A DNA stretch of 64,000 bases from Lepidodermella squamata (GCA_047495785.1 JBLDXI010000085.1:124001-188000); one strand, 5' to 3'; numbered from the stretch's first letter, positions 15,461 to 64,000 are shown. A program made the numbers and translations. The notes: generated from the sequence alone by a model not told the origin.

Positions 15461-18400
15461 TTAGACCGCAAGAACCGGCGAGAAAGCAGCGCAGTTCAAC
15501 TCGAGGCGTCGCATTTCTTCTTCAGGGAGCACTCGGCCGACAATGCTCAGGCAATTCATCTGACCGACGAACAGGTCATCAAATGGATTACTGGAAAGCA
15601 GGAAAATAAGGGATTACAAGGAAATTGAAAGTTAATTATGAATTTATTTGACTTTTTCAGTCCAGATTAATTCTTGCGCTCTCACGAAATTTCAGGTCTC
15701 GAAGCGGTTACGTGGAATTATCGATGAATATTCACTCTTTAAGTAATAAATGACCGAGAACAAGTCAACAACGGGGTTTGGCTTATTTTCTGTATTTTCC
15801 AGTGAATGGCAAAACGTGTGTTGGCTTGAAAAAGAACGATTCTAGAATTCCTAGGTGTCTTTTCTCTTGAGGATTTCGAATTTTCAAGTTTTAGACCTCT
15901 AGGATGAGAAACATTGAAACACGGAAAACCCCAGAAGTGCCCTATAAAGTGTCATTGATTCAGGTTGACCCAGAGACGCTAGCTTGATCCCAACAAAATT
16001 TTCTGCGATTGAATATTAAAATTTTCTGAGATATTGCCTGACGATGGCCACTTTGTGGCCGAAACGTCGCATGAATCTTTAACAACTTGTTGAATAAAAT
16101 GACTCGAAACTTGCATAAGTACCCTACAAATTTTGCGTTTAATTACACCGAGTCAAAATGTCTGAATCGATACCAACATCTATCGGTTCGGTACTCAGTT
16201 GTAATGGAAACTCGAATATTTTTCAAAATTAGAAATTGCCAATCCTAAACTTTGAAGCCCATTTTCTCTGCAACCCTGATGAATATCAACCTATTTTATA
16301 TACCGATCGACTTCTCGTTTATTGATCTTGAAAGCGGCAATCTCACGATGTCAAACTTTTCGCCAGACCCCACTTTTCACTTATTTCGGTCAAATATAAG
16401 ACAAGTTCGAACACACCTTCCAAGATAGAATTGCTTAATCCTCGTGCGAGCGGTTTCTCCAGCCGTAATTGTAGTGTTAGCATACCGCCCGTCACAGCCA
16501 ACAGATATCACCTTGCTGATTGAATTATAGGAGATTGAAAAGAAATGAGGTGACTTGAGCCCGGCGGAATTCGTGGCAGAATTCGGATCTGACAGACCTT
16601 TACAATCGGCTACAAGATTAGCCGCTCCGCCGTAACCGCTGAATACCATCTGGTCCTCGCTTGACAGCAGAATTTGCAGGTCAACATCTAAAGAAGTCTG
16701 GTTATAGAATAGAATGACCTGGCCATTTTGGGGTGAGCGCGCGAAGAAACTGATCGTGAAATCTGCGGCGCCAAAATCGAGCTTTTCTCCTGACATTTGA
16801 ATAGGATTCGAATTGCTTGTTGAAAGTGACGAAGGCAGTTCGTAAAACACGTTGTAAAATGATTCAGGCATTGTTGGAACAGACACATTGCTAGGCGGTG
16901 GTATGATATCACTGAGATTCTCGAACAGAGGCCAATACGCAATGTGGCCACTCACAATCTCGCCGACATTGCTCGGCACCAGAATGCTATTGGATAGATG
17001 CTGGTAGCACTTCCTTCGAAGTTGCCTCAACTGCCCACCAGTCAGCGCCGCGTTGTACAACACGTAGCAAGAAAAGTAGCGGTCAGTTTGTGGTTCAGTT
17101 GACTGTCTTTTCTTCTTGAGGTGAAAACCTGACCGAAGGAGATCGAATAAGAAATATTGACAGGCACATCCTTGTTGCTATCTACGACGCTGCGATGGTC
17201 GCAGAACAGAGTCAGATCTTTTGTTGCTCCATCAAACGTGAAGCCGATAAAGTGCCAACGATCGAATTCCGTAGTCGAGCAGCTCATCAGGTTGACACCT
17301 GTGAGGTAAAAGTTAATTGGGCAGATAGTGATGATTTTGGTTTGAAATTGATGCAAATCCTTTGTAAGCCATACCTCCGGTGTATTGCATAACGAATTGC
17401 TTTGTAGCACCAGTAAAATACAAGCTGATTAGCGACAGGCCATCCGCGTCAGAGAAACTTGCTACTAAAATGCCGGGCTGAGGGTTGAGGGTCTATAGCA
17501 GAATGGAAACATTTCAAAAAGAGAAAACAGTTTCCATTTGTAACCTTACCTTTGCTTGCTCTGTGGTTATGACTTTGACGTAGACAGCTAACGTGATGCT
17601 ATTACCAATGGTCAGTGGCGATTGGGACAGCGAGGCGACTTTGTCATTGTCACCTGCCATAGACAGGGACGTCCCAGGGTGACCGAATGGTCCCTTAGTC
17701 CATAACGGTGTATCAACGACTGCTTTGATGGCATCTGCGCTGATATCAGTCAGGCCGGAGTTGAATGGCCAGAATCTGAACTCAACCGGCAAACCGGGAA
17801 GGTTTTCTGTAAAACAGAGGAATTTCGGCTGATTTTCTTGATTTGGAGTTGAAACAAACTTATTTCGCATTCAGCCTGGGTGGGGTACAGCTTGACCTCC
17901 TAAAAAAAATATTGACAAATCGAGCAATGTCTCACCTGCCAGGGCGAAGAACATGAGTCTTGTTTGCCGATACACTTGTACTGCGTTGTATTTTCGTTGA
18001 AGCAAAGTCGCCGCTGAAATTAAAGATTCAATTAGAATAAGACCTTGCTACTGCTTATTAGGTACTCACCGCCATAGTCGGTTGAGAACATTCAACATAG
18101 TTACTAGCAAACGTTGAATTGGACGAATAGGAACCAACCTATTGAATCATGATGAGTATGAAACTCATTTGCAATATTTTTATTTGATACCGCTGTAGTA
18201 CCAGCAGGGCATTCAGCATAGCAGCCGGATAGCCCCGTCGAAGTCATTTTGCACTCATGAACTGCCTAATTCGGGACATATAGATTAATCCATTTCCCAG
18301 TGTATAGACTGCTGTTTCTTACCCCGGACAGGCAATCTGCCTGCGAAGGGAATGTAGCGTTGAACGTGGCCTGAAGGCAAAAACATCCAAGGCTGAGATT

Positions 18401-19764
18401 TTAGGAAGCTTGAGATCAAAAACACACGCTCATTGAGCCATTTGAGCAAGCCGAGGCGAAGCAGCCTTGAAATTTCAGATCAGCGTCGAAGCAACGCACG
18501 AATTTTGGTGACTGCGCAGCGAGACAATCGGCGTAATTGCCAGCAAAGTCTTGCTTTGATCTAAACGTAGAAACCTAGGAAGAAATCGTAAACAAATGTC
18601 GTCAGAAAAATTAAGTCTAACGAGTGTCAATCCGTTCCCGCTGCATGATCCGCGACAAACGTTCCCGTTAGCAGAAGAACAAAGCGCAGCAGGCTGATGA
18701 TCTTAATTTAAGAAAATTTCAACTCACGCCGACCAAGCAGTGGTACTTATCAATGTAAACACCAGAGCTGAATTCCTAGATTTGAATCAGTATTTTTCCA
18801 GTTTCATGTTGTGGTAATCGAGTTTCACCTGAGTAGCCGAGGTTGCGTTGCAAGGCGTCGATTGGTATCCTAAGAAAGACCGATCGCTTGCCAGAAAACA
18901 GCGTTGATGCGGCTTGAAATCGCCCTCATTTCTGACAACTGTTCAGCAAAGGTTGTTTCTAGTATTTTTCGAAAAAGCCAACTAACTGTTCTGCCCATTC
19001 AAACAAGCCTGCAGCGTCGCAATTCTTCGTACACTTGTCTGTGAAAAAAAGAATTAAAATGTGAGATTTATAAGATCGGCTTTTGCTTCAAGCTTCAAAA
19101 ACTAACTCCGCCATTTGGGCAAGTTCCATTGAATGGGATGCAACTTTTCTCGCCGTTTTTGTCGCATAACACGGCCCCGAGCAGAGTCTGCAGAAAAAGA
19201 TTTACTCGGATATCATACGATGAAGTAACTCATAGACAAACCATATAACCCTTGATAGCCGTTCTGCAATCTTCGTACTTGCAATCTTCGATTTGAACAG
19301 CTTGCCAATGTACTCAAAGGTCTAGCGAGAATCGATCTTAAGAGAGGTGAAGGAGATCTAGAAAATCCGTACCAGAACTTCATCGGACGAACAGCCCATG
19401 TTTCTTGGGATGCAGCGCATGCTGATTTGCTTGAAGTTGAAACAGCTTCGAGTTGACTGAAATATTTATCAAATTAACGCGAAACAACTGTACAATTCAA
19501 TTCACTCACGCCTTCGGTACAGCTGTCATAACTATTGAGAAGATTTCCAAGCTGTAGAATCGTTGAACAATTAAAGAAGATTTAATCAAGGCTGGATTTG
19601 AGCAACATTTAGCTAACCTGAACTTCTTCGAAAAACGAGCAGTTTTCCTTACAGCCCATGAAGTCGTCGTTGAAGCGGGAGAAGCAGCGTCTGAATTGTT
19701 TCTGTGATTCACAAAGGCTAGCCGCTATCAGCAACAGCGGTAATGATTTCCAAGCGAAAAGCAT
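15461..19764 (-). CDS. Secreted protein: signal peptide, 8 novel 4-Cys modules, two LamG/concanavalin-A-like (pentraxin-like) domains; two apparent +8-nt insertions suggest recent pseudogenisation
   Basis: MLFAWKSLPLLLIAASLCES then modules such as RRCFSRFNDDFMGCKENCSFFEEVQ|LGNLLNSYDSC and VRCFDADLKFQGCFASACSNG..|FPSQADC. LamG hallmarks FWPFNSGLTDIS, RWHFIGFTFDG, YNAALTGGQLRQL, YWPLFENLSDI, DFTISFF, HFFSISYN, FVGQMNCLSIVGRVLPEEEMRRL. Frame breaks near 19280 and 17107. Confidence 0.75.
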
Positions 19765-21444: not shown

Positions 21445-23244
21445 ATGAGAAGTTTATCTTCTTATTATTACGTTTTATGGCTGATTTTGGTTTCAAGCGG
21501 CGTCAACTGCCAATGGAGGCGCTGTCTTTCGCTGCTCGACAATTCCTTCAGCAGTTGTTCGACATCTTGCGACCTAACCACTGATTATCAGGTATTTCCG
21601 TTAAAATTTTTCCTAATTGTTTTATTTTTAATTTTACTTATTTTCAAGTCTGGAAGCAGCTTCACTTCATGGGAGTTGTGCCGCAGTGGGGTGAGAAATT
21701 CAAAGCTGTAATTATAACTTGATTTTTCTTGAATTTTTGCCCGCCTTATAGAACGCTCGGATGTGCTACAAATACGCAGCTCTAATTCCAAGTTGCCGGC
21801 CCGGAATTATTCCTTGCAAAGCTCCAGAGGAAATACCAGTATGTCAATTTTATCTATGATTCCCTCCTTGAAATTCTATTTTATCCGAACAGTTCCAGCC
21901 ATTCTATTCCATGTCGCTGCTACGATCGAGTTTGCTGACCTGCGAGACCGATCGAATGAATTTTTCGGTGAAATTTCTTCCTCTGTAGATAAGTTCTGAA
22001 GTTTCATGTATTCCTCTCTATTAGAATCAAAAGTTCAAGCAGTGCAAGGCGAATGGCACCCTGGTGACGTGTGTTCCAATGGCTCAGAAGTGCCCGAATA
22101 TTTCGGTAATTTACAAGAAATTGTAGCTCGAAAGCTGTAATTTTGGGCTTAATTTTCCTTAGACCACTGACAGCTTACATTTCAATAATCTTGCAACATG
22201 CGTCGATGGGCAAAGTAGGGAATTACTCATGGCCCAGATTTCTGCTTATTTCTATTCTCGCCTTATAGTTCAAGTACCTGATACCGAAAAGCCTCACGTC
22301 CGCTGTTTCAGCAATCCGGATCGAGCTTTTGCTGGCTGCCGTCTCAGCTCAACTGGCTGCTTGGCCAGCAACGAAACACAAGAATCTGCTCCTAAGCCCT
22401 ATCTCGATCAGGCTAGCTGTCTTCGAGGCGTGAGTTGATCCCAGCATTGCCGCCTTCATTTCATTCGATCCTCAATTTCAGGCGGCAGCTCTATGTGATT
22501 CTAATGGAACAAAGAGTTGCGTAGGACGAGCTTGTCCAACAGGATCTAACAGGGTATAACCCTTGTTGTAATTCTTACCAGAAAGCTGAAGTCTTTCTTT
22601 TTCGATTCAAGGTCAAAATTTACGCCAATTCGACTTCATTTCCAAACAATTATGCTGATTGCTTATCGGATCTAAATTCAAATTCGGTTTGTTTTACTTT
22701 TTTGTATTCACATAAAAAGGAAGTTTCCCCTAGATTTTTTAGTTTTTCTTTGTTTGGAACTTCTACCTTTGCCCTCTAGACTGCCTATTCACGCTGCCTC
22801 GGGCCGAAGGGGGTGGTTAAGTGTCGATCAACCGCCTGTCTAGCCGGTGAGAAGCCGTACCCAACGAAGAACTATACAAGCGAATCCGCGTGCCAGAATG
22901 CCGTCAAGACGATAACGTTCCACATGATTGGCGGCGGGCGTTCGCAAGCTGTCAACTATTGCGCAGGATTAGGCGGACTTCTTGTGACAATCAAGACAGC
23001 AGAAGATCTAGCTACGGTTCAGGCACTGAAAGGCGGTGTTACATCGTCTCAGATTGGGCTCGACAACGTGCCTGGTGACTGGACGTGGGCCGATGGTACG
23101 CCCTACGCTAATTTTCCGCCCTGGGATAACAACCAACCGAATGACGGCCCGAATGCGTTTGTCTTGATTTACAACCAAGGAGTTTTGGTCGACCTCGGCT
23201 CTGTTGGTGGTGCTAGTTCATTCCTGTGCGAGACTTACAGCTGA
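21445..23244 (+). CDS. Secreted protein: signal peptide, 6 novel 4-Cys modules, C-terminal C-type lectin domain (QPN motif)
   Basis: About 10 GT-AG exons splice in frame: MRSLSSYYYVLWLILVSSGVNC-QWRRCLSLLDNSFSSCSTSC..|SFTSWELC..|RMCYKY..|KQCKANG..|VRCFSNP..|ALCDSNG..|SRCLGPKGVVKCRSTAC..NYTSESAC. CTLD: AVNYCAGLGGLLVTIKT..IGL..WTWADGTPYANFPPWDNNQPND..FLCE. Confidence 0.85.
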
Positions 23245-41099: not shown

Positions 41100-41800
41100 G
41101 AGGACATGGGCAGAGAGCGTAAGCTGTTCTGGGCAGTCCATTATTGTGTCTTGTTGCTATCTACAATGCTTTCGGCGCCTGAAGATCAGCCGGTTTTTTT
41201 TGAGAAGATACCTATCCATTCTACCTAATGTTCAATTCGGAACTGCGAATAGGATCTGCTTCTACAAGCGGGTGAGGTTGGGCGAGCCTTCCACCGATGA
41301 TTTGGTGAAGAATTTCGCAGGTTTTGCAGCCCTGGATGAAATACTATCGTTGCTATAGCTCGAACTTCACGAAATTCGCCTGCGGACCTACGATAAGCTT
41401 TAAGCCTGGAGAGGTTAATTCGAATTGGATAATCAATGTCCTAATTCACTTTTCTCTTGCAGGTCTCAGGTGCGATTACTCAGATCGGGCTAGTTGCCAC
41501 ACAAGGATAGAGATTTTCAAGATCCTATCGCCGAACAGCCCGTGATTCGCTGCTACAAGAATTCGAATGGTAAATTCCAGACCTGTCGACCAGGCTGCCT
41601 CAACGACGAGTTCCAGGTAAGAAATGCGTCCATAAATTTTAGAATAAATACCTACATTTAATTATCATTCCAGAATGGCCCGACGTATATCTTCAAAAAT
41701 CTTGATGTTTGCCTGAAAGCGCTGGGACCTTTCGCGCTAATTGTTTACTATTTCTCCAGGTTTTCTGATATTTCAGGGTGCTATGTAAGTGCTATGTAAG
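41100..41800 (+). pseudogene. Orphan, degenerate 3' remnant of an astacin-type gene (4-Cys-module exons only)
   Basis: Exons MKYYRCYSSNFTKFACGPT.., RCYKNSNGKFQTCRPGCLNDEFQ and NGPTYIFKNLDVCLK match 49330-49750, but with fused or deleted introns and no upstream gene. Confidence 0.7.
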
Positions 41801-42462: not shown

Positions 42463-45400
42463 ATGAAGCAGATACTAGCATTCACACTACTTTTCAGCTT
42501 CGTAGCAACTTCCCGTGGAATTGTGGGTGGCTTTTGCTTTATAAACTCATCTTCATCTAAACACATACACATTGCAGGATCCGGAGCTTGAAGATGTTCT
42601 CTGGCAATTGAACGATGCCATTCTTGCAAATCATGGTCTTCCACCGGTAAATTTTCGAGTAGTATCGCGTTAAATTTGTCATGCTCCTTGTTTTCTAGGC
42701 CAACCGTAGTGTCCCACTGAAGCTATGCGGCGTTCCAGATATGGATACCGCGCAAGCCAAACTGAGGCGACAACTGGCAATCGCGGATGGCGAGCCATTT
42801 GTGGCCGGAGTGAATTTGGCTGCCAATCTCTGGGAATTTCCTATCAAATACCAAATCAGTGAATCGTACAGTTAGTTGAACGCTTGTTTGCTTCGCTTCT
42901 TCTAGGCTAATTTCATCGTGATGTTGCGCATTGAGCAGACGCCTAACGAACCTTCAAATTTCAATTCTTACGCATATTTTCCGCCTCCTTTTCGCGTAAT
43001 AATCAGTGATATTACGCCATAAAGTTAGTTGCATGGTTGTTAAATTGTCTTGCTCGTTTTAGGCTAATTAATCATCTCTCTTTTTAGCTTAATTATTCTA
43101 CTTTCATCAATATTTAATATTGAAAGTCATTCATACAGCGATTCCTCTTGGATGTATTTATTCCAAAGAGAAAGGAATGGCCATAGTTATTATAGTCATG
43201 CTAAAAGATTGGGAAGTAACCAGAATTCTACCGACTTGTTCGGCTGTTTTCATGCCAATTTCTTCGTCTTTGTTCGGAAATACTAAATTCAAGGAAAATA
43301 ATTTCAGCCAAAAAAAATTAGAAATTGGCGAAGGCTGTGGGATTTGAATCATCGTTCTCACACTCCTAACCCAGCCTCTCTCACCACTAAGCCATCTACT
43401 CTCTTGAAATTAGTGACCGATTTCTTGCGACTTCACTTAGTGTGTGGAAATCTTAATTGTCAACTATGATGGCTATGAAAATTCTTTAAAAGCCATTCGA
43501 TCCGTAGCGTGTCCACTTTCATTTTCTTTATGGACTTTCTTTGCTGGCAAGAGGGCTTGAGTGCCCACCGATGTTCAGCATTGAGCTATTCAGTTAAATA
43601 CAGTGCGCGAAGTAGGATCCTCGAACTAGGTGGTATTTTAGGGCCCCCCCCCCCCATTCGAATCGACCAAGGATAGGACGGCCGCCCGGTACCGCTCGAG
43701 GCAGTTATGGTCGCGTTGCGGAGCGTAGTCCTAGGCCGTGGCCGCCGTTCTACCAATGGTCGCTGAAGATCTCCCGAGGAGTTAGATTGAAAGGAAACTA
43801 TGGAAGGAATATTGCCCGATTAAAAATGTGTTTAACTTACTTAGTACTTAGTACTTCTAAACCTGTTAGTATATTGATAAACATGTTGGCAAGATGAAAA
43901 AAGATTTGGCAAGATGAAAAAAGATTTATTGCGAATTTACACTAGATTTAACGATTAAATTATTTTCCAGAACAAATTTTGGTTAGATAAAAAAAAGATT
44001 TTGGCAAGATGAAAAAAGACACAGCCGTAGATGGCTTAGTGGTGAGAGAGGGTGAGAACGATGGTTCAAATCCCTCAGCCTTCACAAATTATTTTTTATG
44101 GCTGTAATTAAATTAAGGGTCATTAAATTAAATTAAATTAAATTAAATTAAAATATTAAATTAAATTAAAATATTAAATTAAGGCCGAAATCAGACCATT
44201 CGCTCAGATTTTTTTACCCCGCCCGAACCTTGAGCTGGTCGAATTAGGGTCCAATTTAATTGTATTATCTATTGTGTAACTTATGATCATAAGCATCGAA
44301 TTTCAAATTCACCTTGTTTTGGATCAAATATAGCTACCTATTTTTAGCGTATCCAAGTTGAAAGTTTGCTGTATTGTGTGATTGCAGCCACCGATGAGAA
44401 AGCAAACATCCGCGCAGCTATGGACCGCTGGGAAGACGTTACATGTGCCCGATTTGTCGAAGATGCAAATCTCGCGCAAGATCAGAACGGCTTGAATATC
44501 TTCAAAGAATCAGGGTGAGTGATTTTTCGAATATAAGTACAGCAATTCATAACAACAGCTATTTCGCGACATTTTCCAAGATGTTGGTCATATATTGGGC
44601 GAATTCAATTAGGAACACGGCAGGACTTGTCTCTAGGCGACGGCTGCACGGCGGTATCTATCATTTCATAAAAAGCTATTCTCCGATTGAAGGAAATTAT
44701 CATTCAGGTATTCATTGCAGCCCACGAAATCGGCCACGCTCTGGGAATGGTTTGGTTTTTTTCTATTTCGAATGGCATGCTGTTAACCTGTGTGTCTCAC
44801 CAGGAACACGAGCAATCGAGAACGGATCGCGATAACTACATCCGAGTCCTATACAAGAACATTTTAGCGTAAGTTCATTTGTAAACATCTTCAAAACTTT
44901 CGTCGTAATTTGTATCCACATGCAGCTCCGATGCATACAACTTTGATACTGTACTTACGGATGAGAATTCCAATGTGTCGTACAATTACGATTCCGTTAT
45001 GCACTACGGCTGGGACGCTTTCGCTAAAGCGGCAAACTTGCGAACCATGGAAACAATTGATAAGCGATACATGTACACGATAAATGAGAAGAATTTTATC
45101 TCTTTCGGAGATGCGAAACGAGTTAACATACGATATAATTGTGGTAAGTTTAACATATGGTTAGGTTACCTAATTTTGCGTAAAAGTGCAAAAGATTCAG
45201 CCTTATATTTTTTCTGAATTATCTGAATTAATCATTGAATAACATTGTCTTGGATAGAATTACCCAGGGCTAGTAAAATTTCAACCTCGAACTTTTGAAA
45301 AATCCTAAAATTAATTATTGGTGAATCGTTCAATGCTATAGAACCGACTTGACCCCTCAACCCAAGGCTACTATTAGGGATGGGCGATTATTAGCGACTG

Positions 45401-48400
45401 GACTACTATTGGCATGTGACGTAGATAGGACGCCGCACTAAGAGGTTTTCGGACACGAAAAACTGAAGTCAGACTAATAAGGGGCAAAGTTCATCGTTTC
45501 AAATTTAATGAGATGAATCATGTCATTATTTTCCACCCCAATATTTCTTGTGCTGTTTGTGTGTAATTTTGAGCTCAGTTCATCTTTGAAGATGCATCTC
45601 CTCTTTGTGGCGTCTCGGAAACCGCGCCAAATCCCTACTTTTTGCGATCTTTGAAACTTGAACTAATTAATTTTAAATTTTTAAATTTTAATTATTAAAC
45701 AAATTCGAATTGAGCCCCGCCATTTTATTTTTTTTAAGCTGCAAAATATTCTGAATATTAATGAGGAAAAAAGTGAACACGTCTTCTTGTCTGTCGGCGT
45801 GCTCTGAGTGCGGCGTCCTATCTACGTCACATGACTATTGGGACACATACGTTAAATTAAATTAGTTAATTTATTAATTTTAATTTATAATTTCAATTTA
45901 TAGCTGAAATGTATTAAGCTGAATTTGTTCTTAGTTTTCTTAATAACTCCATTTTCTTATTTCGAATTCATTAGAATAATAATTTCAATTTCAATTTTAA
46001 TGGCTCTGTGTGTTGCGCCCGCGGAATTCTTAAAATCGCCGCGGTGGTGCGCTGCGGAATAATGCGCGAGTGCGCGCGATTGTTTACCTTTCTGCTTAAT
46101 AGTGTGCAAAGGTGCGGTGTTAAGACTTTTGACGCGGAAACCACTATTCGCGCCGCGGAAAAATTTAAAAATAGACGCGGAAAGTAGCGATGAATCCGCG
46201 GAATTAAATCCATTAATCAGAATAACTTGGCGGCTGGTTTTTTTTGCAAAAATCATCCACTGACCACAGAACCACTTCGTCACGTTAGCTAAACGCGGCT
46301 GATAGCAAACCGCTAGCACCTAGCGACTGGTATTAAAGCTCTATAATGGGCTAACTTTTTCGCGCAATGTCGGCCAGATATGCCGTAAAAGGGATGTTCG
46401 CTATCGGTGCGCATGAACTGGGTGTTCGGCGGCTGCGTACCTATGGGACTCGAAATGAGTTTATACCGGACTGCGCACGAGGGTGGCTATAGTAACACCG
46501 AAACAACCGCCCATTGCTAGCTCCTAGCACCTAATCGGGGTGGTTCGATAACCACTGAGACTGAGCCGAGCCATTTTACGACCCGTGTTACTCAGCTCTT
46601 TCCAAACGCTGGACGCTATTCCCCCGCCGACCCATTACAACATGTAGCAGTCAATTTCTTGAAAAACCGCGTTCGAATGAACCCTCTCCGTGCGCAGTTG
46701 TCACATTTTTATTGCCCTTATTGCAGGTCTGCAAGGCGCTCGCTCTCAAAAGCGGTGTTAATCCGCTAATCCCTAATCCGCGTCTCAAGAGTTCCGCCCC
46801 TCTTCGCCGCCCTAGCCCTCTGTATTGCGCTGTTGACGTGACTCGCTACCTCAGGACACCGGGCTGTGTAAACAGCTTTGGTCAATTTTGCCGATTGTTG
46901 TCGATTTCGTTGAAGTTTTTCGAAAGTTTTTCGAAAGTTTTCACACGGCGCGCAACTTGGCGCAACTTGCAAAAACTTGTCAATATCATCCCACTGGCTG
47001 AATTCGCTCATTTTTACGGTACCAAGAGCAACGGATATCGCTAGCGGCGCTTTGGTGGTGAAGATGTTTTACCGCCTTCTTTACCTGCGTATTACCTGAC
47101 TCAGCGGCAACGGGTCAAGTCGACCCGCCGGTCACCAGTCACCTGTTGGGTCAGGTCACCGGTCTGGTACTAGTCGTGAGACCATGAGACGTACCAGGAC
47201 GCCGAGGCTTGATAAAAGGGGCAAAAAACATCAGCTCGTGCCTCAAATCAATGCGACGAGCTCATGAATAATCCGTTTCGCTTTACACAGATTTTATTAT
47301 AGGAGATTCGAAGCCTCGGCGTCCTGGCACGTCTCATGTTCGCGGCCGGTCAGCCGCTGCCGATTGACCGGTTTTCAACCGAAATATGTCACAAAACTCA
47401 GAAATTTTATAAATCGCGTCTTTTGTTTACTATTAGCGTCTTTTGACCGCGCGCACTCACCGATTTCAGCGGGAAGCGATTAAATAAGCGCGGCGGATTA
47501 ACATTTTGACCGCGCCTTCACAAATTCGCGGCGCGCGCACAAATTCCGCGTCATTTTACACATTTCAGCGTCGTGTTTACTTTGGGCGAATTTTAATTCT
47601 AAGTTTTCCGCCGATTTATTCCAAAGATTTTCCAATTTCTCTCTTTTTAGTTGAAAACTCATGTAATGGCAAGGCTCTACCTCAGCCTTGCCAGAATGGA
47701 GGCTATCAGAGCCCGAATAACTGCTCGAAGTGCCTCTGCCCGGAGGGTCTAGGTGGCGATTTCTGCGAGACCTACGGCCCATACAAAGGTCCAGTTCCAT
47801 GCGGCGGTTACATCGATGTAAACGCTTGCGGCTACACTTCAATCACCTCGCCCGGCTACCCGAATGTTTACGACAAAGAAACGTCTTGCAACTGGTGGAT
47901 TAGAGCGGTAAATTCTAACCAAAATTCTTATCAAATCTTGAAAGATTAATGTTCCAGCCGGCCGGCTCTGGATTAGTTTTCGGCTTCGAAAAAACACCCG
48001 ATCTTCCGAACGAATATTACTGTAATAATCTGAAACTGAATTGAAATTTTCGTTGGATTTTCGCTCTATATTTTATAGATGGGACGAGTTGCGCAGATTA
48101 CGTTTCAATTCGTGATTTCGACAGTGTTGATAAATCACTGATGATGTGCGTAATTTTTGAATCCTGGATTGGGTAATAGTTATATCTCTTTTTTACAGGT
48201 TTTGCACTTTTAGCATTTCCAATGGTCGAGTTTACTCAACTGACGAGAATCAAGCCATAGTCACATTCGGAACGCAGGGCATCTCAAGCACCAGCACCGG
48301 CTTCAATTTGACTGTCTACGCAACTTGCCCTGATACGAAAGCAACCTCGCTTACCAAGGAGTGTCGAATTACCGATACGGGACGTGATTATGAAGGCACG

Positions 48401-50000
48401 AACGTTACTACGTCGTCCAGGGGTGGAGCATGCTTGAAATGGTCCGACAGGGCAACTGTGTACGATTTGGGACTGCCAATGGGTGATGTGGCCGCGTCGG
48501 CAAATGCCTGCCGTGCCTATTTCACCAACGACGATGACCTTGTATGCTTCGTCGGCAAAAACGTTTATGACGATTGTCCTCTAGTTGAAAAGTGCCCAAC
48601 AAGTAAGTAACGTGCTTAATTGAAAAGGGCCGATAAATAATTTAAGCGGAATTTTTCAACTTTTTCCATTTGAACTCTAGCTTTTTGTCCCAATCCGTGT
48701 CAAAACGGGGGAACTTGTGTTGGCGTAGAAATTTGCAGCTGCCAAGCTGGTTGGACCGGATCAACCTGCTCAGCTCGTGAGTTCTGTAGTTTCCAAGAAG
48801 TTTGACTGAGACTTCCTTATTGTAACAGGAATCCCACCAAAATATGAAAGATGCTTCCTGAAGAGCACTGGCGATTTATCTATATGCCGATTGGCACCTC
48901 CGCTGTCACTGGGCTGCCATGAGTTTGAGTACCCGGTAAGGCTAACCAATCATATTAATTCCAGGGTTATTACCTAATTCAAGGGCGGTCGAACTTTTCC
49001 AAGCTACCAATCTTGCGAGAGAGGGGTAAGTGAATGCAAACTTCTTCAAATATGATGATGCTCGGTTGATAAAATAGCCTGTGAGCTACTGCTTTTCACC
49101 CGCAACTGCCGACTTCAATTGTCGCTTTGGTGAATGCAACGTCGGCGAGAAACGGGTAAATCAATATTTTATACCTAAATTCCTGAATTAATTTGATTGA
49201 TTTCAGATCAAAATCTTCTCCAGCTCCCGATTTTTCGCAGGCGAGAATTTAGTGGCATGCCGTAATCTGGCTTCACATGTAACATAGTTCCCATTCTTTT
49301 AAACTCAGCGAACCCTTTTTTATCACCAGATGAAATACTATCGGTGGTCCAGCTCAAACTTCACGAAAATCGCCTGCCGACCAACAAGTGGCTATAAGAC
49401 TAGAGAGGTTAATTCGGATTCGATCATCAATGTTCTATGTCATTGTTCACGTTTCTCTTGCAGGTCCTAAGCGGCGTTTACCCAGATCGGGCAAGTTGCC
49501 TCGCAAGTAAGGATATAGATTTTCGCAGATCCGAATGACGTTTCATTTTCAGACACAATCGCCGAACAGCCCGTGGTTCGCTGCTACAAGAATTCGAATG
49601 GTAAATTCCAGACCTGTCGACCAGATTGCCTCAATGACGAATTCCAGGTAACAAATGCTTCCATAATTTTTTGAAAATAAATATATTTTCATTATGATTC
49701 CAGAATGGCCCGAAATATTTTTTCAAAAATCTAGCTGTTTGTCTGAAAGGGGTTTGGACTTTCGCGGTAATTTGTTACAATTGCAAATGATTTTCTGATA
49801 TTTCAGGGTGCCAGGCTGTGTAAGCGTAATCGCAAGCAAAATTATTGCACAGGAACGAACAGATCATGCAAGAAACAGGTATTCTTTACTTATCTTTCTA
49901 ATTTACTGAAGTTGGTCGTATTTTCATTATACAGATCCGAATTTTCGGCACATCTGACCTATTCGCCGATAATCTGGCAGCGTGCCAAGCAACCAGCTAA
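42463..50000 (+). CDS. Astacin (M12A) metalloprotease: signal, short propeptide, catalytic domain, EGF, CUB, kringle-like, EGF, five 4-Cys modules
   Basis: Spliced HEIGHALGM|EHEQSRTDRD, Met-turn YDSVMHY, CWSYIG, CQNGGY..CLCPEGLGGDFCE, CGG..ITSPGYPN..CNWWI, ECR..GRDYEG..CLKWS..NACR, CPNPCQNGGTC; ends ..ADNLAACQATS* at 50000. Confidence 0.9.
43300..43400 (-). mobile_element. tRNA-derived SINE head, copy 1 (astacin intron)
   Basis: Reverse strand GTAGATGGCTTAGTGG (A box) ... GATTCAAATCC (B box); no proper cloverleaf. Confidence 0.55.
44027..44110 (+). mobile_element. tRNA-derived SINE head, copy 2, internally deleted and inverted relative to copy 1; followed by (ATTAA)n to ~44180
   Basis: gtagatggcttagtggtgagagagg..gagaacgatggttcaaatccctcagccttc. 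Confidence 0.55.
45413..45833. mobile_element. hAT-type MITE (421 bp) in astacin intron
   Basis: 27-bp TIR CATGTGACGTAGATAGGACGCCGCACT; perfect 8-bp TSD ACTATTGG at 45405-45412 and 45834-45841. Confidence 0.9.
47184..47338. mobile_element. Short MITE with ~28-bp TIR
   Basis: catgagacgtaccaggacgccgaggctt / aagcctcggcgtcctggcacgtctcatg. Confidence 0.65.
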
Positions 50001-51143: not shown

Positions 51144-53406
51144 ATAATAATAATCTCATTTTTTTTAAATTGACCTCGCCTAGACCACCGGTCCGATTTA
51201 GATCGGTCCGTTTACGAACCCGTTCACTGTTTTCATCACGGAAAAAAAGAAAATATTCCAGATGATTCTGGCGGTACATGCGTCCAAAAAACAAAAAGCT
51301 ATTTCGAGCTATTCGACTTACGACTTACTCGAAAACAACCGTAACGTACCATTTCTGTCTAGTCGGACTCTATTAATAGCTTCACCATGTTGTTTTCCTA
51401 TAAGCATGCCATGATTCTGCGTGATCACTTTTTTATTTCATTCATTCATTTTATTTATTTTATTTGAAAAAATGAAGCAGTTAGTTGCTGTTACACTACT
51501 TCTCAGTTTCGTAGCCTTATCCCGTGGAATTGTAAGTGGCTTCTATTTTTATCAACTCTTCACCATCTAAAAGCATATGCTTTCAAGGACCCGGAGCTTG
51601 AAGATGTTCTCTGGCAATTGAACGATGCGATTTTTGCAAATCATGGTCTTCCACCGGTAAATTTCCGAGAAATATCGCCATTATGTGTAATGCCCATTGT
51701 TTTCTAGGCTGACCGCAGTGTCCCACTGAAGCTATGCGGCGTTCCAGATATGGATACCGCGCAAGCCAAACTGAGGCGACAACTGGCAATCGCTGATGAC
51801 GAGCCATTTGTGGCCGGAGTGAATTTGGCTGCCAATCTCTGGGAATTTCCTATCAAATACAAACTCAGCGAAGCATACAGTTAGTTGAACGGTTATCCAA
51901 TTTTCTCGCTCCTATCAGTCTAATTATTCTCAACATATTTTGTCCCATGATATAATCCATAGCGAAAGGAACGGCCAGAGTTACCACTCAAGCTAAAAGG
52001 CCATTCCTTTCTCTATGATTATTTACACCAGAACAAAAATCACCCAAATTTATCTACCAAAAGCATGAATTTAGTTTCGGTATCTGAATTCGTTTCAGTA
52101 GATCTGCATTTTTGTAGATGAATTAAGGTAATTTTGGGCATGATTCAGATAAATGTTTAAAATCGGCGAATCAGAATACTTACAGGGCCCTAATTAAGGG
52201 GATACCACAAGGTAAAAGAACCACCCTAATTAGGGTGATTTTTTTCTGTGTAGTGAGTAAGAACAAGTACCCGGTAGGCCTAACTCGTTATAACACTGAT
52301 TAAATAATAACAATTGTTCGTTCAAGGGCACTCGAACGTTTCCAAGTTATCAATCTTGCGAGAGGGGCGTAAGTAATTGGCAACTGATTCAAATATGAGA
52401 ATATTCTGCTAATTTAACAGGCTGTGAGCTACTGCTATTCCCCTGGAGCGGCTGATTTTACTTGCCGCCTTGGAGACTGCAAAAGCAACGAAAAACGGGT
52501 AAAATCAAATCTACCTTTTTATGAATATCTGAAATATTTCGATTGATTCCAGATCAAAATCTTTTCCAGCTCTCGCTTTTTCGCCGCTGAGAATCTGATG
52601 GAATGCCGTAATCTGGCTTCACTGGTAACATAGTTCTCCGTGTCATTTGAACACATCGAGGCTATTGATCCCTCCAGATGAAATACTATCGTTGTCGCAA
52701 CTCAACGAATACATCGAATATCGCTTGCCGACCGACTAAAGGCTGTGCGACTGGAGAGGTTAACTTTAATATTCCACCATGTTTCTTGTTCTTATTAATA
52801 TTTTTACAGCTCTAAAGTGGCGTTTACTCGAATCAGGCTAGATGCCTAAAAAGTGAGGACTATCTTTGCATTCCAAGCTTACAAATGGTAATTTTGTTTC
52901 CAGGTACGTCCGCTGATCAGCCTGTAGTTCGTTGCTACAAGAAAATGAATGGTGGCTTCGTAACATGCCGCCCCGTTTGCCAAAATGACGAATTCGAGGT
53001 GGGATTGCGTCGTTAATTTTCCGAAAGAGCATGTAATTTAATTTTGATTTCAGAATGGCCCGACGTATTTCTTCAAAAATCTGGCTGTTTGCATACATTT
53101 CTTTCCTTTCTCTGAAATTCATGATATATTTCAGGGTGCAAGGCTGTGCAAGCGTAATCGTCTGCAGAAATACTGCATTGGCTCGAATATATCCTGTAAA
53201 AAACAGGTAAAAATAGCAATCTCTCTCTATTATAAGCTATATATGTTAACTTTGCCTGTGACAGATCAAGATTTTCGGATCATCGGACCTTTTCTGCGTA
53301 TCGATTTTCGAATTCTAAGGATTTTTAAAATTTAATACTTGTGTGGAGCGTTCTCCCACTTATTTTATTCAACGTCGTATCAACTTCAAGCACTATCGTC
53401 TTTTCA

Positions 53407-58167: not shown

Positions 58168-58247
58168 TAGGCTTGAAAGTGCATAAAAGGCTCACATGGT
58201 AACTGAAAGATTAAATTGTATTCCAGCAGCTCAAAATAACGCTTGAA

Positions 58248-58319: not shown

Positions 58320-58346
58320 CTCTCGAAAGCTGATTTCGAAATGATC

Positions 58347-59885: not shown

Positions 59886-62800
59886 ATGAGGTCGATTCTT
59901 GCTTTCGCTATATTGCTCAATTTCGCTGAAATTTCTCAAGGAATAGTGAGTAGCTTCCAAATCAATGATTCCTAGTATGATAATTTGTATTTTTTCCATA
60001 GACTCCAGAGCATGAAGATGTTCTCCGGCAATTGAGTGACGCGATGCGTGCAAATCGGGGCCTTTCACCAGTAATTTCCATAGAAATATCGTCATCAGTT
60101 TGTGTTACAAATTATTGCTATAGGCCAATCGTAGCGTCCCGCTAAAGCTATGCGGCATTCCAGATCTCGAAACCGCGCAAGCAAAACTGAGGCGACAACT
60201 GGCAATCGCAGATGGTGAGCCATTTGTGGCCGGATTGAGATTGGATTCGAATTTATGGACATTCCCCATCCGATACAAATTCGATGAGTCTACGCCATAT
60301 GGTTAGTTGAAATAATTGTGATTTTTTTGAATCCCGAGACATCAACATTCACCAAAATTATCGTCATAATTTTCAATTTAATCCAGTCTTCCTGAATAAT
60401 ATAATTTATTTAATTAATTTTTTTTTATTTGTTCATTGAAATATTTAAGAAGAAATTTAATGTTTTCAATACAGAGGTCGGTGAAAAAGCAATCATCCGT
60501 GCAGGTATGGATCGCTGGGAAGAGGTTACATGTGCCCGATTTGTCGAAAATCAAACTCTACCTGAGCCTGAAAATGGTCTGAAAATCTTTAAAGGAATAG
60601 GGTCAGTCAGTTTTGTTAAATGATAGGTATATTGTATGCAAAAAATCTATTGAATATTCTTTTCAAAGATGCTGGTCATACATTGGTCGGCTGCAAGATG
60701 GGAAACGACAAGACTTGTCTCTAGAAAACGGCTGCATGGGGGTATCTATCATTTCTTGAAAAGCTATTGAACTCAAAGATTGAACGCGAACCTCATACAG
60801 GTATTCATTTCAGCTCACGAAATCGGCCACGCACTGGGAATGGTTGGGTTTTTTGATACATATTGATATCCTTAGTCACCATGTGCGTCTCTAGGATCAC
60901 GAGCAATCGAGAACCGATCGCGACAATTACATCAGAATTATATACGAAAATATTGTGGAGTAAGTTGTTTTGAAATTTCGAATCGAAACTTTGATTTGCT
61001 TTCAGGGGCGAGGATTACAATTTCGACACCGAACTGTCCGATGAAAATTTCAATGTCCCATATACGTACGATTCTGTCATGCAATACGGCTGGAACGCTT
61101 TCGGGAAAGGATGGAACTATCGAACAATTGTGCCGTACGATAAACGATTCATGTACACCATGATGCAGCAGAATTACATCGCTTTTGGTGACGCAAAACG
61201 AATCAATATACGTTATCAATGCGGTAAGCCAAAATCTTGCTACAGTAGATGCTAGATGCGATATTTTGGGGATTGAGGAAAACATATCGTTAGAAGTTAG
61301 CATCGAATAGCCACATTTTACTTGTTGGATTTAATAATACGATTTTCTCTGCAAGTCAAGAATCTCAAAAATCAATCATTTCAATTCGAATCTTCAAAAT
61401 TTTCCTGTTACATGAAATCAAATCAAATCAAATTTTGGTACTGGGCTATAATTTCGGGCTCTCCACATTTTGAGGCCGATTTTTTGTCATAACTGTTTTA
61501 TTTATGCTTTCAGTGGAAACTTCATGCAATGGCAAACCCCTGCCACGAAGTTGCCACAATGCAGGCTATCAGAACCCGAACAACTGCTCAAAGTGTCTAT
61601 GCCCGGAGGGTCTGGGTGGCGATTTCTGCGAGACCTACGCTCCGCACAAAGGTCCAGTTCATTGCGGCGGTTACATTGATGTAAAAGCTTGCAGCTACAC
61701 TTCGATCACTTCACCTGGCTACCCGAATACCTTCGACGAGACAACGACTTGCAATTGGTGGATTCGAGCGGTAAAATTTAACCATTTCTTTCAAATCAGA
61801 ACTTGGAAGATTGTCGTTTCAGCCGGCTGGTTCTGGACTAGTTTTCGCCTTCGGAAAAACTCCTGATCTACCCAGCGAATATTTATGTAACACCCTGAAG
61901 CTAATTACCTGAAGTATTGATGGTTTTTCAATTAATTTTAGATTACACGAGTTGCGGGGATTATGTTTCAATTAAAGATTTCAGCAGTATTGAAAAATCA
62001 GCAATGAGGTTCAAAATATTTATTGATAAATTGATTGCTTCATGTATTTTCTCAGGTTTTGCACCGACAGCGTTTCAAATGGCCGAGTGTACTCAACTGA
62101 TGACAATCAAGCTATAGTCACATTCGGAACGCAGGGCATCCCAAGTACCAGCACCGGGTTCAATTTGACTGTCTACACAACTTGCCCGGGTACAACGGCC
62201 AGCTCGCTCACTAAGGAGTGTCGAATTACCGATAGTGGTCGCGATTATGAAGGCCTGAACGTTACTACGTCGTCCAGGGGTAACGCATGCTTGAAATGGT
62301 CAGACAGGGCAACTGTGTACGATTTGGGACTGCCAATGGGTGATGTTGCCGCGTCGGCAAATGCCTGCCGTGCCTATTTCACCAACGACGATGACCTTGT
62401 ATGCTTCGTCGGCAAAAACGTTTATGGCACTTGTCCTCTAGTCGATAAGTGCCCAACAAGTAAGTAACGTGCTTAATTGAAAAGGGCCGATAAATAATTA
62501 AGGAGGAATTTTTCAATTTTTTTCATTTGAACTCTAGCTTTTTGTCCCAATCCGTGTCAAAACGGGGGAACTTGTGTTGGCGTAGAAATTTGCAGCTGCC
62601 AGCCTGGTTGGACCGGATCAACCTGCTCATCTCGTGAGTTCTATAGTTTCCAATAAGTTCCAAAATATTACGCTGACACTTTTCAGGAATCCCACCAAAA
62701 TATGAAAGATGCTTCCTGAAGAGTACTGGCGATTTATCTATATGTCGATTGGCACCTCCGCTGTCTTTGGGCTGCCATGAGTTTGAGTACCCGGTAAGGC

Positions 62801-64000
62801 TAACCAGTCATAGAAATTCCAGGGTTATTACCTAATTCAAGGGCGGTCGAACTTTTCCAAGCTACCAATCTTGCGAGAGAGGCGTAAGTGAATGAAAATG
62901 TCTTCAAATATGATGATGCTCGGTTGATAAAATAGCCTGTGAGCTACTGCTTTTTACCCGCAACTGCCGACTTCAATTGTCGCTTTGGTGAATGCAATAT
63001 CGACGAGAAACGGGTAAAATCGATATTTCATACTTGAACACCTAGAATATTCCGAGAAATTTAAGGTCAAAATCTTCTCAAGCTCCAGATTTTTCGCCGG
63101 TGAGAATTTAATGGAATGCCGTAATCTGGCTACACCGGTAACACGATTTCCCTTTTAATTTGATTTCCACAAGCTTTTCGTTCCCTCCAGATGGAATATT
63201 ATCGTTGGTCCAGTTCGAACTTCACGAAAATCTCCTGCCGACCAACAAGGGGCTTCAAGCCCGGAGATGTTTGCTTGAATTCGATCATAAATTTCCTTGA
63301 TCAAAATCCCTTTGCAGCTTCTCAACGGCATTTACTCAGATCGGGCTAGTTGCCTTAACAGTATGCAATGATATAAATTTTCCATATCCGAATGACTTCT
63401 TTTCTTCATCAGACACAATCGCCGAGCAGCCGAGCAACTGCTCAAAGTGTCTATGCCCGGAGGGTCTGGGTGGCGATTTCTGCGAGACCTACGCTCCGCA
63501 CAAAGGTCCAGTTCATTGCGGCGGTTACATTGATGTAAAAGCTTGCAGCTACACTTCGATCACTTCACCTGGCTACCCGAATACCTTCGACGAGACAACG
63601 ACTTGCAATTGGTGGATTCGAGCGGTAAAATTTAACCATTTCTTTCAAATCAGAACTTGGAAGATTGTCGTTTCAGCCGGCTGGTTCTGGACTAGTTTTC
63701 GCCTTCGGAAAAACTCCTGATCTACCCAGCGAATATTTATGTAACACCCTGAAGCTAATTACCTGAAGTATTGATGGTTTTTCAATTAATTTTAGATTAC
63801 ACGAGTTGCGGGGATTATGTTTCAATTAAAGATTTCAGCAGTATTGAAAAATCAGCAATGAGGTTCAAAATATTTATTGATAAATTGATTGCTTCATGTA
63901 TTTTCTCAGGTTTTGCACCGACAGCGTTTCAAATGGCCGAGTGTACTCAACTGATGACAATCAAGCTATAGTCACATTCGGAACGCAGGGCATCCCAAGT
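59886..64000 (+). CDS. Astacin paralog 3, same architecture, runs off the window; contains an in-frame internal duplication from 63435
   Basis: MRSILAFAILLNFAEISQGI|..KLCGIPD..; HEIGHALGM|DHEQSRTDRD; YDSVMQY; EGF, CUB, kringle-like, EGF, then 4-Cys modules. Confidence 0.88.

Follow-up and report, generated by a model that had tools for sequence, protein, structure and literature searches.

Clustered genes for predicted secreted proteins in a compact animal genome share ~35 copies of a repeat with four cysteines and ~40 residues; this repeat is under purifying selection and forms arrays that are collinear between genes. Gene models were made throughout by hand-splicing from the sequence of the window, i.e. 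the whole 64,000-nucleotide stretch of DNA analysed, and the features are collected in Table 1. Given that module copies in different genes recognise one another and that their coding sequence is selected, we use a new extracellular repeat family as the working assignment. Rather than revealing a novel type of biology, the module looks like another candidate for an extracellular building block restricted to one lineage, and taken as a whole the data are probably best explained by (i) an extracellular repeat that (ii) was copied as a block in the form of an array and (iii) functions as a stalk or adaptor.

In a splice-aware HMM scan, in which every GT/GC..AG splice was enumerated and the joined peptides were HMM-scored, ~24 non-overlapping strong copies scored 22-70 bits versus a maximum of 9.0 bits for decoys made from the reversed sequence. 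Half-module HMMs run separately identified 21 N-halves and 23 genuine C-halves exceeding the decoy maxima; three extra C-half matches, located in antisense frames of the ankyrin repeats, were rejected as false positives. Hand curation gave a total of ~35 copies, the number put forward in the preliminary description, with eight in the LamG-like gene, six in lectin A, one in lectin B and five in astacin 1, again as proposed there, and with three in astacin 2, two in a fragment at 41 kb, 4.5 in a fragment at 52 kb, ~5 in the LamG-gene pseudogene (11.8-13.8 kb) and a half-copy within the inverted scrap at 11.1 kb. All five peptides quoted earlier are present at the positions and on the strands given for them, and module copies do occupy the proposed range, the start of which lies near 11,097 and not at 15,461. 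Roughly 10 of these 35 have degenerated or belong to pseudogenes.

Every one of 18 non-redundant strong copies has the four cysteines, spaced as C-x(7-10)-C-x(3-9)-C-x(15-23)-C; aromatics are conserved as well, namely F/Y following C1, F preceding C2 and the F-x-x-N/S-Y/L stretch ahead of C4. All confident split copies have the phase-0 intron between C3 and C4 that had been described (47-99 nt, GT..AG), three copies lie on single exons (22289-22429, 22783-22902 and 38086-38205), and compliance with the splice consensus is not independent evidence because the scan imposes GT/GC..AG by construction. An HMM built solely from the six modules of lectin A recovered copies from the LamG-like gene (25 and 17 bits) and from the astacin genes (13 and 24 bits) over a decoy maximum of 7.4 bits and missed the most divergent copies; the expectation that an HMM from one gene would find the modules of the others was thus borne out in part.

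Table 1. Module copies, host genes and derived fragments in the window
Feature	Position	Strand	Remarks
Inverted scrap	11097..11165	+	copy of C-half exon of LamG-gene module 1 and part of its intron
Pseudogene paralogue of LamG-like gene	11849..13786	-	79% identical to 17663-18595; beyond the range proposed earlier
LamG-like gene, C-terminal region	16380..17870	-	tentatively ConA-like/LamG-like
LamG-like module 8	17780..18019	-	50.7 bits; 99-nt intron
LamG-like module 7	18079..18265	-	45.1 bits
LamG-like module 6	18323..18505	-	53.1 bits; includes one peptide quoted earlier
LamG-like module 5	18509..18696	-	41.8 bits; score 80 vs lectin A module 5
LamG-like module 4	18728..18915	-	C2 replaced by Tyr; alignment score 100 vs lectin A module 4
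LamG-like module 3	18988..19178	-	weak HMM match; phase-1 intron after; partner lectin A module 3
LamG-like module 2	19279..19456	-	weak; closest cross-gene partner lectin A module 2
LamG-like module 1	19510..19701	-	48.5 bits; N-half 19624-19701, C-half 19510-19551, 72-nt phase-0 intron; closest partner lectin A module 1
LamG-like gene, start codon and signal-peptide-like N-terminus	19702..19764	-	ATG at 19764; hydrophobic leader before first R-C-F
Lectin A, start codon and signal-peptide-like N-terminus	21445..21510	+	
Lectin A module 1	21511..21690	+	45.0 bits; 57-nt phase-0 intron
Lectin A module 2	21752..21952	+	44.0 bits
Lectin A module 3, then phase-1 intron	22028..22213	+	44.9 bits; splice sites read
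Lectin A module 4	22289..22429	+	50.3 bits; single exon; sequence modelled with AlphaFold2
Lectin A module 5	22482..22671	+	42.1 bits
Lectin A module 6	22783..22902	+	42.1 bits; single exon; includes quoted peptide
Lectin A C-type lectin domain and stop	22903..23244	+	Pfam Lectin_C E 2.8e-6; QPN at sugar-motif position
Lectin B	38086..38550	+	single-exon module 38086-38205 (49.7 bits), then C-type lectin domain, QPD motif
Orphan fragment, P3-like and P4-like modules	41336..41721	+	copy of 49329-49842, 76% identical; P4-like 62.7 bits
Astacin 1 catalytic exons	44348..45160	+	Pfam Astacin E 4.5e-13; zinc-binding HExxH...HE motif near 44.7 kb
Astacin 1 EGF-like, CUB, kringle-like and second EGF exons	47653..48802	+	CUB E 2.6e-4; EGF_2 E 1.4e-7
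Astacin 1 five-module C-terminal array, then stop	48840..49997	+	
Astacin 1 P1	48840-49025	+	54.5 bits
Astacin 1 P2	49081-49266	+	10.7 bits
Astacin 1 P3	49330-49505	+	C1 and C3 lost; no HMM score
Astacin 1 P4	49567-49751	+	69.8 bits
Astacin 1 P5	49807-49997	+	41.6 bits
Decayed astacin-tail copy	52327..53294	+	P1 C-half, then P2 to P5
Astacin 2 (paralogue)	60876..63430	+	catalytic, EGF-CUB, kringle-like and EGF exons, then P1-P3
Astacin 2 modules	P1 62698-62883, P2 62939-63125, P3 from 63197	+	

Among the partner domains proposed in the preliminary description, Lectin_C, Astacin, CUB and EGF pass in Pfam, and LamG and kringle fall below the cut-offs: the LamG region, described earlier as two LamG domains, matches Laminin_G_3 only (E 0.2, 12 bits versus a cut-off of 27.6), its remaining exons have no Pfam match and the region has none among PDB sequences, while the Kringle match of astacin 1 has E 0.024 and 15 bits versus a cut-off of 34. 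The lectin domain of lectin B has no direct Pfam match; the whole lectin B unit is 44% identical to lectin A module 6 plus lectin domain. Pfam also detects a Sushi domain in a neighbouring gene. In the LamG-like gene, the C-half of module 5 and the N-half of module 6 lie on one exon with a common open frame (18419-18574). Canonical splicing of module 2 places its C4-bearing C-half one base off frame, the in-frame alternative being without C4, and this frame problem together with the loss of C2 in module 4 suggests that the gene may be decaying. Module 1 and modules 5-8 survive as remnants in its pseudogene, where an in-frame stop is also present and a C1 has been lost. In the decayed astacin tail at 52 kb, P3 contains an in-frame stop and a LINE insertion at 53329 truncates the array, and at 63430 astacin 2 is cut off by a repeat that is 99.8% identical to 61576-62146.

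Conservation of the micro-exons exceeds that of the intervening introns in each of four paralogue pairs (0.94 versus 0.85, 0.76 versus 0.62, 0.90 versus 0.77 and 0.84 versus 0.68) and dN/dS is 0.14-0.19 (n=4); therefore, the micro-exons are real coding exons. The claimed extracellular character of the module agrees with (i) signal-peptide-like starts that run straight into module 1 in two host genes (LamG-like and lectin A), (ii) an enrichment of N-x-S/T sites (15 in 18 modules versus 7.7 expected, a number that 0.4% of shuffles reach) and (iii) partner domains that are all of extracellular types, from which we infer that the module is secreted.

Free shuffling of single modules, as originally envisaged, is replaced on the basis of collinearity by an ordered five-module array as the shared unit. 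The first five modules of the LamG-like gene each match their counterpart among modules 1-5 of lectin A, in the same order (diagonal score 336 versus a mean of 168; rank 1 of 120 orderings), and the two genes adjoin each other head-to-head, are divergently transcribed and have in common the phase-1 intron after module 3. Lectin A module 6 joins the lectin domain without an intron, and the two constitute a separate unit common to lectin B. Astacin P1-P5 also rank 1 of 120 against lectin A but by a small margin (219 versus a mean of 166), and for the astacin array against the LamG array, collinearity fails to reach significance (rank 20 of 120 orderings). We suggest that five positionally distinct modules were duplicated as one block by means of phase-compatible introns, which are mostly phase-0, and local segmental duplication. 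In this model, the array would now be located behind the signal peptides of a ConA/LamG-like protein and a C-type lectin and, with less certainty, at the C-terminus of astacin-EGF-CUB proteases; the co-occurrence of modules in lectin, LamG-like and protease genes, for which a single secreted system linking recognition proteins and proteases had been proposed, can be explained in this way by local segmental duplication.

AlphaFold2 predicts a beta-hairpin, a strand and a short helix for lectin A module 4 with a pLDDT of 78 in the one confident model of five (78 versus 45-50), based on an alignment of three rows. A second, different module has a hairpin and a helix in the same element order inside a poor whole-protein AlphaFold2 model. 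We propose that the module is a small extracellular repeat of ~40 residues that folds independently and is stabilised by two disulfides. In its predicted shape, a beta-hairpin extends between C1 and C2, C3 is followed by a third, short strand, and a short helix runs up to C4. Tentatively, C1 would pair with C3 and C2 with C4. In the P3 lineage, the decayed copy at 52 kb has all four cysteines, the copy at 41 kb is without C3 only and both astacins are without C1 and C3, and this stepwise loss of C3 and then C1 in a single lineage fits C1-C3 pairing; LamG-like module 4, which lost C2 and kept C4, is at odds with simple C2-C4 pairing.

Searches of Pfam-A, PDB sequences and PDB folds returned no known family for the module, in line with the earlier description of it as unrecognised. 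Pfam-A returned no family for 13 module sequences among matches listed to E<=1 or E<=10, HMMER filters discarding most matches above E ~0.1, and at E<=10 listed unrelated noise only (E 0.13-0.47); in these genes Pfam does recognise EGF, CUB, Lectin_C and Astacin. PDB sequences yielded no match to a 14-sequence profile at E<=10, and Foldseek with the AlphaFold model found no match in the PDB below E 2.8. Two metagenome scans for the module were blank, as was a profile search of 1.84 billion proteins with a profile of three sequences and 43 positions; exact look-ups and homology searches returned nothing from the source organism, which is apparently absent from the databases, so that the lineage specificity proposed earlier is putative.

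The loose Kunitz resemblance noted earlier is not supported: modules have four cysteines and not six, their spacing (x(7-10), x(3-9), x(15-23); n=18) is not the Kunitz/BPTI (PF00014) pattern C-x8-C-x15-C-x7-C-x12-C-x3-C, the HMM matches none of the 13 sequences, and BPTI (1brb_I) is at Foldseek rank 39 (E 9.7, TM-score 0.31) with a moderately confident query model. The earlier view that the module is recognisable neither as EGF nor as ShK agrees with the searches. None of the 13 modules match EGF-like families (PF00008/PF07974), which have six cysteines, although EGF in the same gene is detected at E 1.4e-7, and when hhalign compares the module profile with that of the EGF domains in the window, the probability is 0.5%. 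ShKT (PF01549) has six cysteines and is all-helical whereas the module has four and a predicted beta-hairpin, with no Pfam match. CBM1 (PF00734) is an all-beta wedge with ~9 residues from C3 to C4, the module having 15-23 and a predicted helix before C4, again with no Pfam match. Nor do Sushi/CCP (PF00084) and TSP1 (PF00090) match in Pfam, for which a conserved Trp and WxxW plus six cysteines, respectively, would be expected; a properdin TSR is a weak Foldseek match (probability 0.10).

Hand-splicing from sequence alone could in principle have assembled chance cysteine patterns or dead exon relics that are not parts of proteins, and the facts that roughly one third of the copies reside in fragments or pseudogenes and that the scan itself demanded GT/GC..AG would speak for this. 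It is very improbable and largely refuted by the gap between real copies (22-70 bits) and the best decoy (9 bits), by exon over intron conservation and dN/dS of 0.14-0.19 in four independent paralogue comparisons, and by the frame of lectin A, in which no stop interrupts the reading from the signal peptide across all six modules and the Pfam-verified lectin domain up to the final stop codon. Alternatively, the module could be a highly diverged version of a known small disulfide domain (four-cysteine EGF-like or Sushi-like, CBM1-like carbohydrate-binding, TSR-like or a truncated Kunitz domain), the relationship being hidden by sequence drift in an unsampled lineage. Small cysteine-rich domains evolve fast and search power was limited, with only three sequences and 43 positions in the profile of the largest search and three sequences behind the structure model; fungal CBM1 resembles the module in its four cysteines, C1-C2-C3 spacing and an aromatic-x-x-C-L ending and has the 1-3/2-4 pairing tentatively proposed for the module, and properdin TSRs are among the weak Foldseek matches. 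Given that Pfam-A detects EGF, CUB, Lectin_C and Astacin in the same genes and none of 13 modules, that the 14-sequence profile is blank in the PDB, that no Foldseek match lies below E 2.8 and the BPTI TM-score is 0.31, that hhalign against the EGF domains of the window gives a probability of 0.5%, and that 15-23 residues with a predicted helix between C3 and C4 contrast with all-beta CBM1, EGF and Sushi, we regard such a hidden relationship as unlikely.

With an unchanged fold, the role could also differ: the modules may be putative ligand-binding units for glycan, chitin or a mucus matrix that tether both lectins and proteases to one extracellular substrate, with no passive stalk. The conserved aromatics around C1, C2 and C4, a low dN/dS that extends over the entire module beyond the cysteines, and the joining of the same array to three kinds of effector domain would fit such a function, and the position-specific identities kept between genes suggest that each position has its own partner. 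The aromatics are equally compatible with a binding module and a stalk and may merely build a small hydrophobic core, however, the module matches no carbohydrate-binding family in Pfam-A or PDB sequences, and heavy N-glycosylation is more typical of stalks; thus, we consider ligand binding rather doubtful. In the stalk or adaptor model that we infer, the module would be N-glycosylated and deployed in ordered arrays, and an array would form a rigid glycosylated stalk or adaptor by which the domain for recognition or proteolysis is spaced from, or docked on, an extracellular partner common to these proteins, much like CCP or EGF arrays in other mosaic proteins.

Several known systems share traits with the module. 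Kunitz/BPTI domains resemble the module in being small and in features predicted for it, namely secretion and a beta-hairpin ahead of a C-terminal helix that bears a cysteine, but have six cysteines at fixed spacing and a canonical binding loop. CBM1, the fungal-type cellulose-binding module of ~36 residues with four cysteines paired 1-3 and 2-4, is close in its C1-C2-C3 spacing, conserved aromatics and N-x-aromatic...C-L ending; it normally occurs singly on a glycoside hydrolase whereas the module forms tandem arrays on animal lectins. ShKT/SXC domains are found on the C-terminus of astacin metalloproteases in cnidarians and nematodes, and these disulfide-rich modules of 35-45 residues often occur in tandem after an astacin(-EGF-CUB) core like the five-module tail described here. 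CCP/Sushi and EGF arrays, as in selectins and complement proteases, have no sequence or profile similarity to the module and a different cysteine spacing, and differ from it in that each copy of the module is itself intron-split and in its predicted C-terminal helix. Similar to the module arrays, they consist of small disulfide repeats in a fixed order with phase-compatible introns and position-specific identities; CCP and the first four EGF cysteines have the 1-3, 2-4 pairing tentatively proposed for the module; and they act as stalks or adaptors beside a C-type lectin or protease domain, the types of domain that the module arrays adjoin.

The four-cysteine module is a genuine coding unit: it is under selection, it has a regular gene structure and it is arranged in collinear arrays. 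The preliminary description quoted five module peptides, all of which lie exactly where it placed them, and claimed about 35 copies. A strict regular expression written from its consensus recovered just 6 copies. In a splice-aware scan, every GT/GC..AG intron of 35-140 nt was considered on both strands (a ceiling of 400 nt yielded chimeric modules), the flanking open frames were joined in three phases and the products were scored by an HMM iterated from 15 seeds; about 24 non-overlapping modules scored 22-70 bits compared with a peak of 9 bits on reversed sequence. Half-module HMMs run on stop-free segments, without a splice model, found 21 N-halves and 23 true C-halves above the decoy maxima, and the three false C-half matches were antisense frames of ankyrin-repeat genes. 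After hand curation of the weaker copies the census comes to about 35 modules, as proposed (table). The weak modules L2-L4 of the LamG-like gene and P2 and P3 of the astacin tail are poorly recovered by the HMM and were assigned by position, cysteine pattern and pairwise similarity. The expectation that an HMM from one gene recovers the modules of the others held for part of the copies and failed for the remainder: an HMM of the six lectin A modules alone gave 25 and 17 bits for copies of the LamG-like gene, and 13 and 24 bits for astacin copies, with a decoy maximum of 7.4, and the reverse directions behaved similarly.

Module-bearing genes, their derivatives and neighbouring features
Feature	Position	Strand	Modules	Remarks
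Inverted scrap of module	11.1 kb
Pseudogene copy of LamG-like gene	11.8-13.8 kb		~5	outside the range of the preliminary description
LamG-like gene	19764 to 17780 (start codon and modules L1-L8); 16380-17870 (tentative LamG-like region)	-	8	signal peptide
Lectin A	21445-23244	+	6	A1-A6; sugar-specifying site 23100-23180
Lectin B	38086-38550	+	1	sugar-specifying site 38400-38470
41-kb fragment	41336-41721		2	P3-like, P4-like
Astacin 1	44348-45160 (catalytic); 48840-49997 (module tail P1-P5)	+	5
52-kb fragment	52327-53294		4.5	decayed astacin tail
Astacin 2	60876-63430	+	3	paralogue of astacin 1
Trypsin-like gene	1406-3252	+		followed by Sushi-like repeats
Trypsin-like gene	26638-27312	-
Ankyrin-repeat genes	4004-5420; 6761-7342			long; 99-nt (33-aa) units
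7tm_7 genes	27883-33152	+		three intronless tandem paralogues; 476, 394, 394 aa
Small ORFs	33490-33882; 34534-34923	-		~130 aa each
Dynein-light-chain-type gene and partial duplicate	39389-40048; 50102-50479	+
Non-LTR retrotransposon	53329-57714	+		full-length; ORF1 500 aa, ORF2 961 aa
tRNA cluster	58096-58429	-		Ala-CGC, Lys-CTT, Gly-TCC; three genes in 334 bp

The 18 non-redundant strong copies have four invariant cysteines (C1-C4) with spacings x(7-10), x(3-9) and x(15-23); they further share an R ahead of C1 and F/Y/L behind it, an aromatic 2-3 residues upstream of C2 with an R following that cysteine, and F-x-x-[NS]-[YL]-x-x-C-[L]-x-G around C4. The frequent Q preceding the module is the translated CAG of the acceptor site and nothing more.

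Gene models were spliced by hand and the reality of the micro-exons was judged by comparing paralogues. Module exons are better conserved than the intervening introns in all four paralogue pairs compared (0.94/0.85, 0.76/0.62, 0.90/0.77 and 0.84/0.68), and Nei-Gojobori dN/dS is 0.15, 0.14, 0.19 and 0.19. All five differences between the first modules of astacin 1 and astacin 2 are synonymous, and the following module contains a strongly diverged intron. Lectin A has a continuous frame: starting at an ATG with a hydrophobic leader, it passes through ten exons to reach the Pfam-verified lectin domain and ends at a stop codon. The phase-0 intron reported between C3 and C4 is present in every confident split copy, one each, with a length of 47-99 nt and a position 3-7 residues past C3; three copies are intronless. 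Introns between modules are mostly in phase 0, with one in phase 1 after module 3, and some are missing, L5 and L6 lying on one exon and A6 being fused to the lectin domain. The predominance of phase 0 makes any exon-sized unit frame-neutral and thus allows tandem gain and loss. In L2 (19279-19456, minus strand) the frame with the expected C4 is one base off and unreachable by canonical GT..AG splicing, which could reflect a frameshift, a sequencing error or a non-canonical splice site. At 63430, where the preliminary description ended, the third module of astacin 2 runs abruptly into another copy of the gene's own EGF-CUB exon; 61576-62146 and 63430-64000 are 99.8% identical over 571 bp, and the junction reflects either an assembly artefact or tandem duplication in the very recent past.

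All-against-all alignment of the curated modules establishes a five-module cassette common to the LamG-like gene and lectin A. L1-A1, L2-A2, L3-A3, L4-A4 and L5-A5 are reciprocal best pairs, the in-order pairing is the best of 120 orderings (diagonal score 336, mean 168), and a phase-1 intron follows module 3 in each gene. The LamG-like gene and lectin A are arranged head to head (start codons at 19764 on the minus strand and 21445 on the plus strand), and the simplest history would be an inverted duplication of a signal peptide plus five-module array followed by the gain of different 3' ends. A6 and the lectin domain form a separate unit that recurs in lectin B (alignment score 135; 44% identity over 153 residues). 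For the astacins, the same cassette is only suggested: P1-P5 against A1-A5 in order ranks 1 of 120 by a small margin (219 versus 166), and P1-P5 against L1-L5 in order is not significant (rank 20 of 120). Given these collinearity scores, we treat the cassette as firm in two genes and as suggested in the astacins. The clustering of module-bearing genes here follows from local duplication and therefore does not speak for the single secreted system that the preliminary description proposed.

Self-comparison shows a patchwork of segmental duplications in the region; the window (42% G+C) is gene-dense, has GT..AG introns of about 50-100 nt and encodes animal-type extracellular domains. Among the partner domains named in the preliminary description, Pfam supports Lectin_C (E 2.8e-6), Astacin (E 4.5e-13), CUB (E 2.6e-4) and EGF (E 1.4e-7) in the long open frames, but kringle and LamG are weaker than stated: the kringle reaches 15 bits where the cut-off is 34, and the LamG exons gave a single Pfam match, to Laminin_G_3 at E 0.2, and nothing in PDB sequences. 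At the sugar-specifying tripeptide site, read from an alignment, lectin A carries QPN; lectin B carries QPD, which is the galactose-type motif of C-type lectins.

Pfam also confirms Trypsin, Sushi, ankyrin repeats, three 7tm_7 chemoreceptor-like genes and one non-LTR retrotransposon. With the two trypsin-like genes, the neighbourhood's wealth of secreted proteases and lectins extends past the genes that bear modules. The ankyrin block at 4371-4952 (582 bp) matches 6761-7342 at 99.8% identity, a sign of recent gene conversion or duplication. The 7tm_7 trio (DNA identity 75-81%) matches this gustatory-receptor-like chemoreceptor family at Pfam E 1e-14. The two neighbouring small ORFs, which have signal-peptide-like starts and share the motifs TPQQYAR.RFG, HGDRATELAVEKTK and a terminal RPRFKV, may encode a duplicated small secreted protein or peptide precursor. 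Adjoining astacin tail copies is a partly duplicated gene (91% identity) for a divergent dynein-light-chain-type domain (Pfam E 1.5e-7) that follows a hydrophobic N-terminal extension. The retrotransposon, with weak OTU-protease-like and FYVE/zinc-finger-like matches in ORF1 and an endonuclease and reverse transcriptase in ORF2, lies directly 3' of the truncated last module in the 52-kb astacin-tail copy, and its insertion probably disrupted that copy.

The preliminary description did not recognise the module as a known family, and our searches of Pfam-A, PDB, a protein library and metagenomes agree. Of the 5 by-reference and 8 spliced module sequences compared with Pfam-A, none had a meaningful match, the few entries listed being unrelated noise at E 0.13-0.47. 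PDB sequences gave nothing real for profiles of 3 and 14 modules; a chance defensin match at E 0.24 came up first and nothing thereafter. Because just one split module is free of stops when read through its intron, deep by-reference alignments were impossible, and the protein-library search and the first structure prediction used a three-sequence alignment (alignment A2), the second prediction a two-sequence module-plus-lectin alignment (alignment A3). The three-sequence profile had no match at E<=1e-3 among 1.84 billion representative proteins, a search of low power since that threshold is out of reach for one match of 43 positions. Metagenome scans with a LamG-like exon and with the module-plus-lectin alignment were blank, and the literature search found nothing relevant. 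Against the window's own EGF domains the module profile reached a probability of 0.5%. Exact look-up of four window ORFs in the protein collection found no match, homology searches found none for the lectin B module plus lectin domain or for a 7tm_7 receptor ORF, and the best relative of the LINE reverse transcriptase is 33% identical, the named matches being nematodes and insects and uninformative for placing the organism; from these results the source lineage appears to be missing from protein collections.

For module A4, AlphaFold2 gave one confident model out of five (pLDDT 78; the others 45-50), with predicted strands at residues 3-8, 13-19 and 28-31 and a helix at 41-46. The model of module plus lectin domain (pLDDT 44), usable solely for the secondary structure of the module, has the same hairpin and helix. 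With the module model, Foldseek E-values were no lower than 2.8 in PDB and 1.4 in BFVD; bacterial MbtH-like proteins, the top PDB matches (TM about 0.6), were put down to chance likeness in a simple shape of three strands plus a helix. The suggested likeness to Kunitz domains is not borne out (BPTI, TM 0.31). Within the P3 lineage, all four cysteines survive in the decayed 52-kb copy, only C3 is missing from the 41-kb copy, and C1 and C3 are missing from astacin 1 and 2, the pattern expected if C1 pairs with C3; with this single lineage, and L4 lacking C2 alone, the putative pairing stays tentative.

The strong modules and their partners point to proteins that are secreted and glycosylated, as judged from two signal peptides, the partner domains and an excess of N-glycosylation sites (15 compared with 7.7 in shuffled modules; 0.4% of shuffles reach 15). 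We lean towards a reading in which the ordered array of small two-disulfide repeats is a glycosylated stalk or adaptor, which would carry the recognition or protease domain. The main functional alternative, that the modules bind ligand directly, is suggested by their conserved aromatics, by the low dN/dS across the whole module and by the position-specific identities that modules keep. Bolder than the stalk or adaptor, and in our view rather less probable than its opposite, is the proposal of a new domain family, possibly with a new small fold, that is confined to an animal lineage essentially missing from sequence databases and whose five-module array serves as a portable docking cassette on three unrelated effectors (C-type lectin, ConA/LamG-like and astacin protease), sending all of them to one common extracellular target.

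The module opens no new mechanism and settles no long-standing question; the most useful outputs are a module HMM for annotation and a clear case of array-level domain transfer. As each split module is divided between two exons that measure roughly 40-95 nt, these genes will be missed or broken up in standard gene finding and in ORF-based domain scans, and the HMM would improve annotation of the genome of Lepidodermella squamata and its relatives. If the finding holds, the array is a clean, datable case in which an ordered array, rather than a single domain, was copied between neighbours to build mosaic proteins. On the searches made here the module itself is unassigned and probably represents a new family, though of a well-known type, that of lineage-restricted cysteine-rich extracellular repeats, which would add one more family to the small disulfide-bonded extracellular repeats.
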